Shown one piece after another: positions 6,040-56,000 of a stretch of 64,000 bases of DNA. Source of the stretch: Piromyces finnis finn (lineage: Eukaryota > Fungi > Neocallimastigomycota); contig MCFH01000064.1 of assembly GCA_002104945.1 (NCBI GenBank), forward strand, positions 1-64,000. Direction: 5' to 3'. The position numbers and the translations under genes are program-made. The notes under the pieces were generated by a model that made no database searches, was not told where the DNA came from, and saw nothing but the letters and a program-made list of their open reading frames with translations. Each line of letters begins with the position of its first letter. Positions within the stretch are counted from its first letter, which is position 1.

Positions 6040-7030
6040 ATACTATTTAAACTATTTCTTTCCTTATTATCAAAAATATTATATACCAATTGATCTATAA
6101 CTTTCCCTTCCATTTTAAAATCATTCAATCCACACTATAAAAAAATTTTATATATATATATTTTTTTTTTAATAAATAATATACACTTTAAATAAATAAA
6201 TATTACTCTTTTATTTTTATATAATTTAATTTGGTTGATTTATTGGGAAAGTTAAAATATATATAATTTCTTTTTTACTATTTTTTTTTTTAATTGTATT
6301 TGCCTTAATATTAAAATAATAAATAAATAAATAAATAAATAAATAATATTTGAAGATAGTTCAATTATACTTTCTTTTGTTTTTTGAATAACAAAAAAAA
6401 AACATTCTTTTCTCTATCTTATAATCATTATTACTATTTGGTATTAGTATTATTTTAAAATAGTTTGTTTTATTTTATTTTCTTTCTTTTATTATTATTT
6501 GTTTACTTTTTATTATATTATTATTGTTTTAATTATTTAATTATTTTTTTTTTATTTTTTTATTTATTTATATATTTATTTATTATTTTTTATAAGGTAT
6601 ACGGCCTGCTTTAGATATTACTTATATAAAATATAATTAATTTATAATTCATAATTTATTATTTTTTAATTATTGATTTTTTTTATTATATTAAATGATT
6701 TTTATAAAAAAGGGATAATATATAAATAGCTTTTATGCTGAAAATTTTGTTTTCAACTTTTTTCAAAAAAAAAAATGATGTATAAAAATCTATTCTTTTT
6801 TTCAGCTTTGGATTTTTTTGTAACTTATCTTCATTAATAATTTAATTTAATTTATATCTTTTTTTAAAAAATGCTTTTAGAAATGCCTTTTTGATTAAGG
6901 TAGTATTAAAAAAAAAAATAAAAAAAGTATATATATATATAAAGATAATATTTATATATAATTATATATTCATTTTATAAAATGATTATTATATATGAAT
7001 ATATAAATTTAAAAACTTATATCAATACAT

Positions 7031-8038
7031 TTAAAGGTCAGAACGGCAGCGTGGACCAGTTGGTTCAGAAGTTAAAGCAGTTAAACCAGTCTTTGGTTCA
7101 CAAGAGTGACGAGTTTGAGAACCTCTCTTTGGAACAACACCCTTACGTAATTGCTTAAGAATCTTCTTAACAGAAGATGGAGATAAATCTTCATAGTAGT
7201 CATCGTTAATAGACATAACTGGAGCGTTACAACAGGCACCAGCACATTCAACTTCAATTAAAGTGAACATACCATCCTTAGTAGTTTCACCAACGTTAAT
7301 ACCTAATTCCTTCTTGATAGTATTGAAAATTTCATCTGAACCGCAAACCTTACATGGAGTAGTACCACAAACTTGTAAAAGGTATTTACCTCTTGGTTCT
7401 CTGTGGAACATAGTGTAGAAAGTGGCGACTTCATAAACTCTGATTGGTGGAATTTCAAGGAATTCAGCAACAGCATTCATAACTGGAACACTACACCAAC
7501 CATGTTGACGTTGAGCAATATCTAAAAGTGGAATAGTAGCACCTCTCTTGTAATCATCTGGATATTTCTTTAAAAGTTCTTCAGCTCTCTTTAAGTTTTC
7601 TGGAGAGAACTATTATTTTTTAAATATATTATTTAAGTTTATTGATATTGTAAAGTTTTAAATTTAATCTATATTTAACATAAAATAAATATTACCTTGA
7701 ATGGGGCCATATTGGATGGTTTAGCATCAGTTCTTGGCTATATAAAATGTAAATTAAATTTTTATTAATATTCAAAAAAAAATTAAAAAGGTGGGGTAAA
7801 TAAAAATTTTTTCATATTTTTGACATTCTTTAAATAAATGAAAAAAAAATAAAATATTTCAAATAAACTCTCTTCCTTATTGATTATATTTATTAATTTT
7901 TTATAAAATATATATATTATATACCATAACATTTCTAGCAACAATTGGAGTTGAAGAAAGAGATCTGGCAGCTAATAAGCTAGCTTTTGGGAGGATAGAT
8001 TTGCTAAGTAATGAAGTAGTTGGCTTAAGAGCGAACAT
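7031..8038 (-). CDS. nuoE: NADH dehydrogenase 24-kDa [2Fe-2S] subunit (NuoE/NDUFV2) with organellar presequence; exons 8038-7925, 7737-7696, 7609-7031 (244 aa)
   Basis: Motifs YEVATFYTMF, QVCGTTPCKVCG and VECAGACCNAP (four 2Fe-2S cysteines). In-frame GT-AG junctions. Basic, acid-free N-terminus MFALKPTTSLLSKSILPKASLLAARSLSS. Confidence 0.95.
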
Positions 8039-39953: not shown

Positions 39954-41265
39954 ATGAAGAGCTTATTTATTATTTCTTTTATTATATTAGCTTTAGGATC
40001 AAGAACTTTCTGTTATTTTATAAAAAATCTTGGAAGAGATTTTGAAGTTTTAATAACACAATTTTAAATATTGATATTAAATTACCAAAAAAATAATATA
40101 ATGAATTAATGAAATCAATACCGGAATTACTACTATTGAAAATGTTCAATCACTTATTATGAAGTTGTTAATACCACTATTATTTTTATCTATGGCAATA
40201 AAACTGTGATTTATTAGAACTCTTCTATTAAGATTAGTGGAATGCTTTCAAGATTAAATAAGAAAGTTGGTTATAATCTTAAACATAGCCGTGATTTATT
40301 TGAAAGAAAAAATTATAAGTTAAGAGCTGAATTTAACGAATATACTTATATGCGCCAAAACCTTTCTTATGATATTATGAATAGAAGTGGAAAACCATCA
40401 ATTCAAGCCACTTTCTCAAGATTTACTATTAATGATAAATTCCTTGGTTTTTACACATTTATTGAAGCATTTAAGCTACATATGATTAAAAAACTTTTCA
40501 ATCTTGAAATCCCTAAAGATATGATTCTTTATCAAAATAAGGTTGAAGATTTTTTATTTAATGAAAAAGCAACTCCATTCTTTGTTAATTCTACTGCTAA
40601 GAAGAATGAAACAAGCAATTTTGAAGAATTTGAAAAAATTACTAAAATTATCATAATATTCAAGACTATTGAAGATTTTAAACCATATATTGATGTTGAT
40701 AGCTTTTTAAAACATTTAGCATTTGATTAGTTATTAGAATCCTTTGATTCTCTTATTATTACTGGTCATAATTTCTTTTTATACAAAGACCTAGCGATAA
40801 CAAATGGATTCTTTTATACTATGGTCTTGATTTTACATATGATTATGGCTTTGAAGAAAGTTTTGGTATGATCTATTGACCTTGCTGAATAATTTCTTTA
40901 GTAATATTTTAGTCAACACTTTAGTTTTGAAAGATAACACTTGTTTCAAAAACATTTTAAAGGAAATTTACCAGGTAGGGCTAATATTGTTAGTAAAGAA
41001 GAAACTGCTACCTATGAATTACTTCAAACTAGTACTGAAAATTATATTGATGATTATATGATTATAATGCAGGTTTAAACCTTTTATGGAAACTAAATTT
41101 AACATTACCTATAGAGAATTTGGATTTGGTCTAAAAGAAATTCAAGATGCATCTGTTACAGCTAACCCAAAACCCTTTTTTAACGAAATGATTGAGGCTT
41201 CAGAAGCTAACTCTATTAAACTAGTGATGCTTTTTAGTTTAGTTTTTTTCATTATTTTTATTTAA
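39954..41265 (+). pseudogene. CotH kinase-family pseudogene (intronless; signal peptide; hydrophobic C-terminal tail)
   Basis: MKSLFIISFIILALG leader and CotH-like core YKLRAEFNEYTYMRQNLSYDIMNRSGKP...INDKFLGFY...DVDSFLKHLAFD*LLESFD...GHNF. In-frame TAG at 40728, frameshift near 40790 and further breaks before 40240. Confidence 0.75.
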
Positions 41266-41715: not shown

Positions 41716-44700
41716 ATGGATTTTGATACTTTTGAATTAACAACAAACAATTATCCCGTGTTACAAAATAATGAAAAAATAGTTAAAAGACAGAATAATG
41801 TTACCATCTTAACTAAGTAAATTTTTTGTAATTAAAAATATATATATTTGTTATATAAAATTAATACCAATTTAAATATTTATTTATTTATTATTATTAT
41901 TATTTTTTTTTATATTATTACTTTTTTTATTTATAGTAAGCAAAAATACCAAAGAGGAATATTATATTTAACTAATTTACGATTATTATGGTTGAAGTTG
42001 GGATCTATAGAAAATAAAACAGTAGCAATAAATTTAGAAGATATTATATCAAAAGAAACAAATGTTAATTTCAGAATTTTATTTTATTTTTTAAAAAATA
42101 TATCTTATAATAAATAATAAATAAAAATAATAAATAACATTTAACAACAACAATAAAAAACAATAATAGTAGCAATATTAATTAACCAAATACTCTTATT
42201 TACATTATAATTTTATATCTATACATTTAATTATTTTGAAATTTAAATAATAAAAATTAATGCTTAAAAAAAATTCTTTGTATAATGAACATTTAAATAA
42301 TTAATATTTTTTAAAACAGTCAAATATTCTTTCAGCATCAACAATTAAACTTGAAATTAATAAATCAAAAAAAAAAGATGAAAGTAGTAATGATAACAAT
42401 AAAGAAAATGTTTCCTTGGAAGAATGGGAATGTCAAATTTGTAATCAGATGAATAATGGAGCCGATACTGTATGCGTTCTTTGTGGTGTTCCAAAAATAG
42501 AAGATAAGGGTTCTGTTGATGAAATTGATAATAAGCCAAAAAAGAAAAACGATGCTTATTCCAAACCTCCCGTTAGTTCCACAAGTGGTTATGTAAAGAA
42601 CGATTATAATAAAAATAATAATTTATCATTGTCATTTTCTCCTATCAGTTTAAATAAATCACTTCCAGAAAAACCTAAAGAAATTTTAAAATACGAATGC
42701 CCAGCTTGTACTTTTATTAACGAAGGAAATAATGATCAATGTAAAGTTTGTATGACTAGACTCGATGGTGTAAAACCTCTCCCTCCTCCTCGAACAAAAC
42801 CTATTATTTGTTCAATATGTTTTTATTCAAATGAACCTGATGCTACTGTTTGTTCAATATGCTCTATGCCATTAAAATATTGCGCATCAAGTTTTGATTC
42901 TGAATTTTCTAATACAAATAATAATAATAATAATAATTTATTATTTCCATCTAGTAACAGTTATATTAATTCTGCATCATCTATTCATTATCCCACCTTA
43001 GCAGAAACTTCAAATATATCAATACCTAATGGATATGATGTTATCAATCCATACAGTAATATAAGTATGGATGATACTTCAAAAGAAACTGATGATGATG
43101 ATAATGATGATGATGATTTTGAAAATACAACACCTGTAACTCCAAGTCAAGTATCTTCATTAAATAACTTAAAACAAGATACCATAAAAGTAAAATTATT
43201 ATTTAAATCTGGTCAAACAGCATTTTATAGTGATTTATCAACAACACTTAAAGAAGAACAATGGAAGAAGGTAATATATATATGTATATTTTTAAAAAAA
43301 CAAAAAACAAAATAAAACAAGCACCAAAGTAATAAAAATAAAATAAAATAATTTATTTATTAATTTCATGTAATTTTTTATAAACATTTTAAAGGTAAAT
43401 GTAATCGAAAATAAAACTTCTAAAGTTCAGCGTATTGGTGTTGGTATGCATTTTCTGCTTATACAATTAATATTTAATAAAAAAAATTTAATTAAAATTA
43501 AGTTATTAATTAAACATTTTTGAAAATGTTGCAATCATAAAAAAATAAAAAAAAGCTGGTGTTATACGTAATATTCAAGAAAGTCAAAAGAATACTAATG
43601 AAATAATGAATCAAGCATTCCAAGATTTGAATAATTTAATGAAAAAGGCATCTGAAATGGTACATTCATTTACAAAAAAAAAAAAAAATATTATAATTTT
43701 TACACTAAATCATTTATTATCTGATAACAATGTTACAAAATTGAAATATACTTATTTATATTTTATATATAAATTAATATTTCATATATAGGTTGCTATT
43801 GCTGAAAGTATAAGTCAAAAAATTAATAAAGATAATAGTATGGAAGGAAGTAAAGAACAAAATCAATTAAAAGAAATTATGCATGAACTTGGTATTTCAA
43901 ATCCAGTTACAAAGTAAATCACTAAAATAGTTTCCCCTTATATAAAACAATATCAATATATTTTTAATAAACATAATAAATTTTTTTAATAATGAATATA
44001 ATACTATTATAAAACTAATAATATAATAAACAGAAAATCAACTGGTGGTGTTTATTATCAAGAATTAGCAAAACAACTTTCACGTTTTATTATTAAACTT
44101 TTCGAAAAGCATAACAATGTTATGACCTTACCTGAAATTTACTGTTTATACAATAGAGCAAGGGGAGTTGGTTCGTATAAAATATACATAAATTTGCTTT
44201 ATATATAAATTTATTTTCGATAATTAAATTAAATATATTTTGTAAAAATCATTTTTTAATTATTTAATGGTATAAATATACATATATACAAAATTCAACT
44301 AGAACTTGTTTCTCCAGAAGATTTATATAAAGCTTGTAATATGTTTGAAAAATTACAAATTCCATTAAAATTAAGAAAATTTCAAAGTGGTCTAATCATT
44401 GTTGAAGATGATATCCTTTTTTTTATTTATAATCATTATTAATATTATTTGTTTTCTTAAACTTTTTTTATTCTTATAATATAAGGTTATTGTTTTTAAT
44501 TGAAATATTTACGTAGTAAAAGTGATGGTGAAATTTGTAATTTAATCACAAATTATATTAAAGATAAAAGTAATAATAATACTAGAGGAATTAATGCAAT
44601 TGAACTTTCTAAAGGTTTAAAACTACCAATTATTTTATTAAATGAATATTTAAAGGTATTTTTTTTTTTATAATTTTATTTTTTAAAACTATTTTTATTA

Positions 44701-44826
44701 AGATAATATTTTGTATAATTTTATAATTTATATTTTTTTAAAAAAAAGATTGCTGAATTTTCATGTTTGATTTGCCGTGATGAAACTATTGAAGGAATAT
44801 ATTATTATATAAATCTTTTTGTTTAA
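41716..44826 (+). CDS. VPS36: ESCRT-II subunit Vps36 (split GLUE domain with three NZF-type zinc fingers; WH domains)
   Basis: YQRGILYLTNLRLLW (GLUE), three CxxC..N..CxxC fingers, IGVAGVIR, AFQDLNNLMKKASEMV, YYQELAKQL, YCLYNRARGVELVSPEDL, LRKFQSG, CRDETIEGIYYY..F*. Confidence 0.92.
44411..44512 (+). other. U12-type (minor spliceosome) AT-AC intron in VPS36, 102 nt, phase 1
   Basis: 5' end ATATCCTTTT matches the U12 donor consensus RTATCCTTT. 3' end is ...TATTTAC. Branch-like TTTTTAAT at 44493-44500. Removal joins GAA GAT G|GT AGT AAA AGT GAT in frame. Confidence 0.88.
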
Positions 44827-52579: not shown

Positions 52580-53058
52580 AATTTAAATTTACTACCTTTT
52601 TTTTAAAAAAAAAATTTATAGTTATAAACAAATATAAACTAATAAAGAATAAGATTGTAATTATATATCTGTAATTTTTGTTTTATTTTCAATAAAATTT
52701 ATCTTTTATTCCACCAAGTACCAGTTAATTATAATAACCTAAAAATTATATAAATAATTAATTAAATTTTTTAATTATTACTTATAAATTAATTTCCTAA
52801 TGAAATAAACTTTTTTATATACAAATTATATTTTCCATAGTTAAAGGAAAAAAATATAATAAAAACATTAATTTATAATTACTATATCATTTTTTTTTTT
52901 TTTTTTTTTTTTTTAATTTTACTTTTACTTTGTAATTAATATGTTGATATAAAATTTAAGTAAAATAAATTCATTAATTTTTGATTTTATTTTTAATATT
53001 GTTATAAATATTATATATTTGAAATTTAAAGTTATTTATAATATTCTAAAGGTTTATA

Positions 53059-56000
53059 ATGAATGAATATTATATTTCAAAAACTCCAATTGTAGAGAAA
53101 CTTGTAATTAAGGCAACTGATCAAGAATCTGTTGATGAACCATTGTTTACTAAGGAGATAAAGGATACAGACACAGTTAAAAAAAAGAAAGTTAGTTTCG
53201 GTGCATTACCATCTTTACATGATTATTTAGATGATAATTATTTTAAAGAATATGATAATTGTTTTCGGGGAAATTCTTTTAATTCCAATAAGTACAAAAG
53301 ATTATCATCTATTGAAGTCAATAAATTTGACTTGAAGAAAACAAAAAAAAGATCATTTAAAAAACGAAAAAAACAAGTTCCAATAAATTATTTTGAGGTA
53401 CAATATTCAAATTATTCACTATGTTCAAATAAAAAGAATAATGGTAGTGTTAAAAATATATCAAATAAAGAAAATGAAAAGGTAGATTATAAATGCCAAA
53501 ATAATATTATAGATACGTATCATAAAAAACCTTTTTCAGTAATTGACAAAAAATATAGTTCTTTAGCTAGAAATGAAACAGATAAACATATAAATTCTAA
53601 ATTAGATGATGAAAAAAAAAAACAACTTTTTAGTAGTAGTAATAATTCTCATTTAAATAGCAAAACTTTAATAAAAGGAAAAAATGATATTATTAAAAGA
53701 AATAAAGAAAAGAGATCAATTTTAACTGGTGATTTGATGGATAATCAATCTTCTAAAAATAATGAGGAAGAATATTTTTCAACAGAATTAATGCTCCAAG
53801 ATACTGATGATATTTTTCATATTAATGAAGATCTTTTTACTCCTGAACAACATAATGATATACTTTTACTTGAAAAAAATAATTATAATATTGCAAATTG
53901 TAAAAATCTGGAGTGTTTTAAGAAGAAACAGTTAGATAAAGTAAAAAACTCTGAACCATTAACTAAAACATCTATAAATGATACAGAAGATATGAAAATA
54001 GATGGAGATGATAATAAAATAAGTGTATATAATGTTTGTCGAAGAAGAAACCTTAAAAAAATTTCCAATATAATGAATTTAACTAAAAATATAACAAAAA
54101 ATAAAAGTATATGTATAGATTTTGATTATTGTGATAGTAGTAGTGATTCAAGTTCATCCTATTCAAATGATAGTAGTTATCAAAAACACAAAAAAGAATC
54201 ACATTCCAACAAGAAGAAACATGCTAGCAATAAAAATGAAAAAATAAATGATAAAGGAAAATATGATCATTTAATGAAAGAAAGTAATACTGTAGACGAA
54301 AAAAATATTGATAATAGTGCTTATGATTTAACATATAATATACCAATATCTTTCCAGAATAAAGAATTATTTAAATTTGCAAATGAAATATATAAAGGAG
54401 AAACTGAAGCATCACAAAATATAGTGCAAACTGAAGAGGAAAAAGAACTCGAGGAAGAAAGGTTAGCTCTTTTAAAGTATGTATTGCCTAATTTAAAGGA
54501 AAATGATCAAATAAGAAGAGATGAAATTATTAAAAAAAAAAAACAGATACAAAATGTTAAGAAAATATTTAATAAGAAGAAGGAAGAATATGAAGAAAGG
54601 GAAGAACAAATAAAGAGAGAAAGAGATCAAAATATTGATACAACAGAACAAAACCTAAAGATGACAAATGTTATTAAGGCTATTATTGAAAGATTAAAAA
54701 ATAATAAAAATAGTTTCAAATTAAATAAAGACATGTTTCGTAAAAATAAGGATGATAAATTACGTAATCTCCCATTGGAAGAATTAAATGCTTTATATCA
54801 TAAAGAATTAAATGAATTAGAAGGGGATGAATATAAAATTATTCCTTCTAATGTTAAGCAAGAAATTATAAGAAAAAATATAATAAAAAAGAGGTTGATT
54901 ACAGCTCCTCGTATGAAAGCATTTGGTATAAAGAGTAAATTTGATAAATCAAATGAAAATGATAACGGATTAAATATAAAGACTCCATCTATGTATATTG
55001 AACTTCAACACATGTTTAGTGATGAATACAATACATTAAAGAAAATATTAAACCATAAAAAGCATCATAGTGTTGATTTACTAACAAATTTAGATACTCC
55101 TTCAGAAAGTATTATGAGTAAGGTTGATAAGTTAAGAAATGGTGTTGTCAGTGAAAGAAATTTACACGAAAATGATGATGACGATACAGAAAAAGAGAGA
55201 GATCAACTTCATAATCGTAGAAAATCAAAAATTCATTTTCATAATCAGCATGTCCATAATTCTCGTAATCGTCACAGCCTTAAACCTAATGAAGATATTA
55301 AAAGAAAAGATATTGAAAAGGATAGTATAATGAAGAAGCATAGAAAAATGTCACACTTAGGTTCTATTAAGAAATTTAAATCCATTAGATTTTCTAGTAC
55401 AGTATTAAATAGTAATAAAACCATGAAAGTTTTAAATCCATTAAATACAAAATCAAAATTATCCAACGAAAAAATAAATGAATTAGAATATATAAAAAAT
55501 AAATCAAATTATATAATAAAAGATACAATTGTGGATAATAATAAGCATAATGCTATACCAACACCATATGGTTCATTAGATTATGATTTGTATATAGCAT
55601 GCAATCAACATAAATATTTCAGAAAGATTCAAAAGACTATTAATAAAAAGAAAAGGGAAGAAAATATTTTAAGAGAAAGAAGAAAGAGTAAATTTTACAT
55701 TATTCAGAAAAACAAATCATTAGCTAAGAGTTCTAGATTATTAAAAAGTCAAAGTATGAATACAGCTAATTCAACAAGTGAGGAAACTTTTATTGATGAA
55801 GATAGTAGCATATATACTACTTCTGTTTATAACCCAGAAGCTTTAAAAAAGGCTATTATGAATAATATTTCTAAAAAAAATATTAATTTATCATGTAAGT
55901 TATTTAATAATATTAATACTAATACTTTTGATGTAGATTCATCTAAAGCAATAGAAGAAAAAAAAGAAAATAATGATAGCATTTTAGTTAACAGTAATAA

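Follow-up and report, generated by a model that had tools for sequence, protein, structure and literature searches.

Positions 44,411 to 44,512 of the window, i.e. the whole 64,000-nt stretch of Piromyces finnis DNA analysed here, most probably form a phase-1 AT-AC intron of the U12 (minor-spliceosome) type within the gene for the ESCRT-II subunit VPS36. We put the probability of this reading at about 0.9. The preliminary description of this DNA had proposed the same class, and the assignment is supported because the intron has the defining sequence features, orthologues retain them, and transcripts of orthologous genes show cuts at precisely AT and AC. With the intron recognized, the P. finnis protein is corrected from 570 to 639 aa, and the C-terminal winged-helix part that ESCRT-II needs is regained. 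The kind of intron and its presence in P. finnis were already known (published 2023–2024). What is new is the corrected 639-aa model, an account of which public models are faulty, and the finding that gut fungi and Basidiobolus share the intron position.

The VPS36 locus and its AT-AC intron in P. finnis

The corrected gene model and the elements of the intron are listed below. Exons 1 and 2 come from mapping the public protein onto the locus, exons 3 to 10 from the exon map and its translation, and the position of the public stop codon from protein-to-locus mapping.

41716-44826, + strand: VPS36 (ESCRT-II subunit) coding region, corrected model, 10 exons, 639 aa
41716-41816, + strand: exon 1
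41937-42063, + strand: exon 2
42320-43270, + strand: exon 3
43395-43443, + strand: exon 4
43556-43659, + strand: exon 5
43792-43913, + strand: exon 6
44034-44170, + strand: exon 7
44303-44410, + strand: exon 8, ending ...LRKFQSGLIIVED plus G, the first base of a Gly codon
44411-44512, + strand: predicted U12-type AT-AC intron, 102 nt, phase 1, 12% GC
44411-44419, + strand: 5' splice site ATATCCTTT, with the U12-type AT-AC donor consensus
44493-44500, + strand: putative branch-site box TTTTTAAT, a U-rich version of TCCTTAAC, whose second A (44499) lies 13 nt before the intron 3' end
44511-44512, + strand: terminal AC at the intron 3' end, paired with the 5' AT
44513-44655, + strand: exon 9, (G)SKSDGEIC...LNEYLK, not in the public model
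44514-44516, + strand: TAG that ends the public 570-aa model
44656-44748, + strand: last intron, GT-AG, phase 0, at a position conserved in other fungi
44749-44826, + strand: exon 10, IAEFSCLICRDETIEGIYYYINLFV plus stop, not in the public model, aligning with the CRDETIEG end conserved in fungal and animal VPS36

The public locus (MCFH01000064.1, assembly GCA_002104945.1) and the window have the same sequence. Its public product (BCR36DRAFT_587157) has 570 aa and matches the window over residues 1-566, with 100% identity across the largest VPS36 exon. It is matched by the Pfam families Vps36_ESCRT-II (PF11605) and EAP30 (PF04157), and the gene has the domain plan of VPS36, i.e. an N-terminal GLUE domain and a C-terminal EAP30-type winged-helix region. 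Exon 8 aligns with the human VPS36 chains 3cuq_B and 2zme_B (E about 1e-7) up to the residue preceding the junction, and protein searches return named VPS36 orthologues across fungi and animals. The large exon 3 encodes RanBP2/NZF-type zinc-finger motifs (CxxC...CxxC) set between Asn-, Ser-, and Asp-rich low-complexity stretches, and its length varies widely among gut fungi. In the public record, the neighbors of VPS36 are a CotH-domain protein upstream (about 40218-40541) and an HSP70 downstream (from about 46775).

All VPS36 introns in the exon map are ordinary GT-AG introns except the one at 44411-44512. There, the upstream exon (...ATT GTT GAA GAT G) stops at 44410 and is followed from 44411 by ATATCCTTTT. 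If the frame is continued from 44411, it runs for 11 codons before a TAA, and neither GT nor GC occurs between 44402 and this stop. The intron ends in ...TTTTTAATTGAAATATTTAC at 44512 and the next exon opens with GT AGT AAA AGT GAT GGT; the phase is 1 because the GT of this exon completes the Gly codon begun by G(44410). We enumerated every in-frame, stop-free GT-AG, GC-AG, AT-AC, AT-AG, and GT-AC pair in the region, and among these only 44411-44512 retains all conserved residues, while every GT-AG option removes at least 24 of them. The preliminary description had placed an AT-AC intron of this extent here, with a U12 donor and no usable GT donor, with its terminal AC 13-14 nt after a branch-like box and with a phase-1 excision restoring the frame, and on each of these points it proved correct.

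Excision of the AT-AC intron is expected to yield a junction in which ...GAAGATG is joined to GTAGTAAAAG.... Removing 44411-44512 together with 44656-44748 gives the 639-aa VPS36, in which a conserved tail of 73 residues is restored. This tail (GSKSDGEIC...CRDETIEGIYYYINLFV) aligns without gaps with full-length gut-fungal relatives and also aligns to the conserved VPS36 ends of other fungi and animals.

The window is very AT-rich (14-31% GC in 2-kb steps), and the short motifs of the intron have to be read against this composition. The donor octamer RTATCCTT is found 4 times in the window, compared with 7.85 expected from shuffles, and on its own it is not rare in DNA of 16-20% GC. Its other three copies (30523, + strand; 46379, - strand; 53161, - strand) are rejected as chance matches, two being intergenic and one antisense to a + strand coding exon. 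The latter exon, at about 53050-53330, begins MNEYYISKTPIVEKL..., and the minus-strand GTATCCTT at 53161-53168 is its antisense and no splice site. Likewise, TTAAY lies 10-15 nt before 5.9% of all window positions, and because of this frequency in AT-rich DNA the P. finnis branch box taken alone is weak evidence. Of the 8 positions of the TCCTTAAC consensus, the box agrees at 5. The 13 nt beyond it read TTGAAATATTTAC; at about 12% GC, the presence or absence of T-runs says little on a polypyrimidine tract.

We infer from these sequence features that the minor spliceosome cuts the VPS36 intron. In the manner of established U12-type splicing, the U11/U12 di-snRNP would bind the donor ATATCCTTT and the branch box TTTTTAAT together, after which U6atac would replace U11 at the donor. 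The branch adenosine, about 13 nt from the intron end, would attack the donor, the 3' site at the terminal AC would be set by its short distance to the branch, and U4atac/U6atac.U5 would complete catalysis. G(44410) would thereby be joined to GT(44513-44514) to give the Gly codon, and the predicted product is the 639-aa VPS36 with a complete C-terminal winged-helix region. Gut-fungal boxes, including that of P. finnis with its three C-to-U changes, differ from TCCTTAAC mainly by C-to-U, and such changes could keep the pairing with the GUAAGGAA box of U12 in the form of G.U wobbles.

Orthologous introns and transcripts in gut fungi

In the VPS36 loci of Neocallimastix californiae, Anaeromyces robustus, and Piromyces sp. 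E2, the codon next to ...VED or ...IED is split after its first base, where ATATCCTT begins. The orthologous introns all end in AC at the same phase-1 point and measure 90 nt in N. californiae, 128 nt in A. robustus, and 82 nt in Piromyces sp. E2. Each of these three relatives carries a TTTAAY box 11-14 nt before the AC: the branch box is TCTTTAAT in N. californiae (second A 11 nt from the intron end), CTTTAAC in A. robustus (13 nt), and TTTTTAAT in Piromyces sp. E2 (14 nt). The interior of the P. finnis intron is only about 55-60% identical, with gaps, to those of the other three when the first 9 and last 22 nt are left out. Exon 9, by comparison, has 141 codon-aligned bases with no indels among the four genomes, at 82-87% nucleotide identity. 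The N. californiae intron shares codon position, phase, and donor with that of P. finnis; it differs in length (90 vs. 102 nt), in its diverged interior, and in its split codon, which is A|GT (Ser) rather than G|GT (Gly).

Transcripts locate the cut in two related genera. In three N. californiae transcript contigs, ...GAAGATA runs straight into GTAGCAAAAG..., so that the intron is cut exactly at AT and AC. In addition, an Anaeromyces-like cDNA contig, 86-100% identical to the A. robustus exons, joins A. robustus locus positions 6098 and 6227, which is an exact AT-AC excision. What exceeds chance is not the motifs as such; it is the placement of the donor exactly at the required phase-1 point and its recurrence at that point in Basidiobolus and three further gut-fungal genomes, with diverged intron interiors.

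The terminal dinucleotides of an intron do not decide its spliceosome, and the P. finnis branch box is degenerate, so the major (U2-type) spliceosome could be imagined to excise this intron as it does a few AT-AC introns. In such U2-type AT-AC introns, the donor resembles GTAAGT but with A at +1, and neither the ATATCCTT donor nor the TCCTTAAC box is present. The VPS36 intron has the same AT and AC termini but, unlike them, combines the ATATCCTT donor with a TCCTTAAC-like box. Moreover, the 9-nt U12 donor ATATCCTT is invariant in six genomes (P. finnis, N. californiae, A. robustus, Piromyces sp. E2, Basidiobolus, and Dentiscutata), and the TCCTTAAC-like box is kept at 11-14 nt, reaching the full CCCTTAAC in Basidiobolus. 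Excision by the major spliceosome is thus very unlikely, and the U12-type assignment is retained.

Public gene models and P. finnis RNA

The preliminary description had also predicted that annotation centered on GT-AG introns would mis-model this gene, and this is seen in several public records. The P. finnis model agrees with ours up to ...GLIIVED and then takes the tail ...VEDDIFT, with a junction product of ...GATGATATATTTACG. It is shortened to 570 aa and lacks 73 residues. This tail requires a 92-nt gap placed somewhere between 44413 and 44507, and all four possible placements of the gap are without GT-AG, GC-AG, or AT-AC ends. The A. robustus model (MCFG01000105.1; intron at locus positions 6099-6226) reads into the intron to a stop (...VEDDILLYIYIYY...). 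In Piromyces sp. E2 (KZ150760.1; intron at locus positions 7270-7351), VPS36 is split into PIROE2DRAFT_2761 and 2762, and the second of these models carries a forced GT-AG intron that deletes 25 conserved residues including LRKFxSG, exactly the loss that had been foreseen for a forced GT-AG intron. The N. californiae public model is correct at the AT-AC intron. Overall, one short intron breaks the VPS36 models of P. finnis, A. robustus, and Piromyces sp. E2, and probably those of two Gigasporaceae. Any minor intron will then mean a truncated or deleted protein in gut-fungal proteomes derived from such annotations.

We also examined P. finnis RNA, using a word-share test on 44303-44655. For each run, the share of sampled words that are present was recorded, and expectations were calculated from exon and intron lengths for four outcomes:

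AT-AC excision (44411-44512): expected word share 0.59
92-nt gap of the public model: expected word share 0.62
Forced GT-AG (44343-44516): expected word share 0.37
Intron retained: expected word share 1.00

A DNA run of P. finnis gave a share of 1.00, and this run may be the source of the assembly. Four P. finnis RNA assemblies from three studies gave 0.61 each, with both flanking exons present and the intron absent. These values exclude retention and the forced GT-AG intron, and they fit 0.59 and 0.62 alike. The exact AT-AC junction in P. finnis RNA is thus one that we infer. Searches for P. finnis transcript-derived proteins found only the shortened public VPS36 model. Metagenome contigs gave 0 matches to the spliced P. 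finnis junction and 0 to an exon 9 stretch specific to P. finnis; this collection evidently contains no sequence from the species, and the blank is uninformative.

It might be argued that the deposited 570-aa model is right, i.e. that about 92 nt are removed, that the protein ends in ...VEDDIFT at TAG 44514-44516, and that the downstream exons are untranslated, and the RNA share of 0.61 fits the 0.62 expected for this model as well as the 0.59 for AT-AC excision. But none of the four gap placements has GT-AG, GC-AG, or AT-AC ends, and the model drops 73 residues whose conservation extends from gut fungi to animals. The frame of exon 9 is also free of indels in four genomes, and the orthologous transcripts use the AT-AC junction. 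We therefore consider it highly improbable that the public model describes the true product.

The forced GT-AG intron at 44343-44516, which would give a shorter protein, is in frame and stop-free, and its equivalent is annotated in Piromyces sp. E2. However, it would start from a poor donor (GTTTGA) and remove 25 conserved residues with counterparts in human VPS36, and the share of 0.37 it predicts is far from the 0.61 of the four runs; we give it hardly any credence. There is equally little reason to think that the intron is not removed at all, be it by retention, decay of the gene, or a base-call error at 44411: the RNA assemblies are without intron words (0.61 vs. 1.0 expected), three other gut-fungal genomes and Basidiobolus likewise have A at +1 and C at -1, and the DNA run, though possibly the assembly's source, holds all words.

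Intron history and known minor introns

To compare the position of the VPS36 intron more deeply, public proteins were mapped back onto their own genomes by exact exon chaining. In Basidiobolus meristosporus, the homologous phase-1 site of VPS36 (SGLLVVQS|LSQSDD) is occupied by an AT-AC intron of 69 nt and 43% GC. Its donor is ATATCCTTTT, and its branch box, 12 nt upstream of the AC, is the full consensus CCCTTAAC. The same AT-AC intron is thus found in three gut fungi besides P. finnis and in Basidiobolus. By exon chaining, the VPS36 site is intron-less in Powellomyces hirtus and Rhizopus microsporus, as well as in two animals, the coral Dendronephthya gigantea and the hemichordate Ptychodera flava. 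The positions of the neighboring VPS36 GT-AG introns are common to the fungi examined.

In Dentiscutata erythropus (CAJVPY010003732.1), G|ATATCCTTT occurs at the homologous phase-1 place in the intron 8 region. The public model uses a GT located 5 nt upstream and a later AG, dropping five conserved residues, and the Gigaspora rosea protein has the same five-residue deletion. An AT-AC reading of the Dentiscutata locus restores ...VVESVTHSDE, which matches ...VVQSLSQSDD of Basidiobolus. Dentiscutata therefore probably shares the intron; the case stays at probable because a consensus branch box was not found near the AC, the only candidate, TTTTTAAC, being 41 nt away.

The VPS36 minor intron is old: Basidiobolus has it in common with the gut fungi, the Gigasporaceae probably do so too, and Powellomyces and Rhizopus have lost it. 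The simplest history is that such an intron arose early in the fungi and disappeared several times. More specifically, we lean toward the view that the intron is at least as old as the ancestor that gut fungi share with Basidiobolus and Gigasporaceae, close to the base of the fungi, with repeated losses (Powellomyces, Rhizopus, and presumably Dikarya). Under this history, the gut-fungal branch box would have drifted to all-U, pairing with U12 only via G.U wobbles or through compensating changes in U12, and most public VPS36 models in these lineages would be wrong because gene callers fail at the intron. A well-anchored minor intron that is conserved across very distant fungal lineages is useful to date the loss of minor introns.

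That these fungi splice minor introns is on record, and the VPS36 intron leaves this knowledge unchanged. Larue and Roy (2023, PMC10639083) report minor introns and minor snRNAs in both P. finnis and N. californiae, and the minor introns of N. californiae and B. meristosporus have been counted at 129 and 237, respectively (Olthof et al. 2024, PMC11347168). The proposal that the P. finnis genome has a minor spliceosome, made from the window, agrees with both surveys. Within the 64,000-nt window, no minor snRNA or other RNA family was found with Rfam at gathering thresholds. We did not find the VPS36 intron named in the text of PMC10639083 or PMC11347168, and a literature search for VPS36 with U12-type introns returned nothing relevant.

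Compared with the U12 AT-AC introns catalogued from early-diverging fungi (PMC10639083; PMC11347168), the VPS36 intron has the same ATATCCTT donor, a branch box near the 3' end, a terminal AC, and a non-zero phase. The public P. finnis model does not give it AT-AC ends. Its counterpart in Basidiobolus shares the position, the phase, ATATCCTTTT, and the terminal AC, and is annotated as AT-AC in the public model of that species. By contrast with the gut fungi, where the boxes have drifted toward U-rich versions, Basidiobolus keeps the full CCCTTAAC box in an intron of normal GC (43%).
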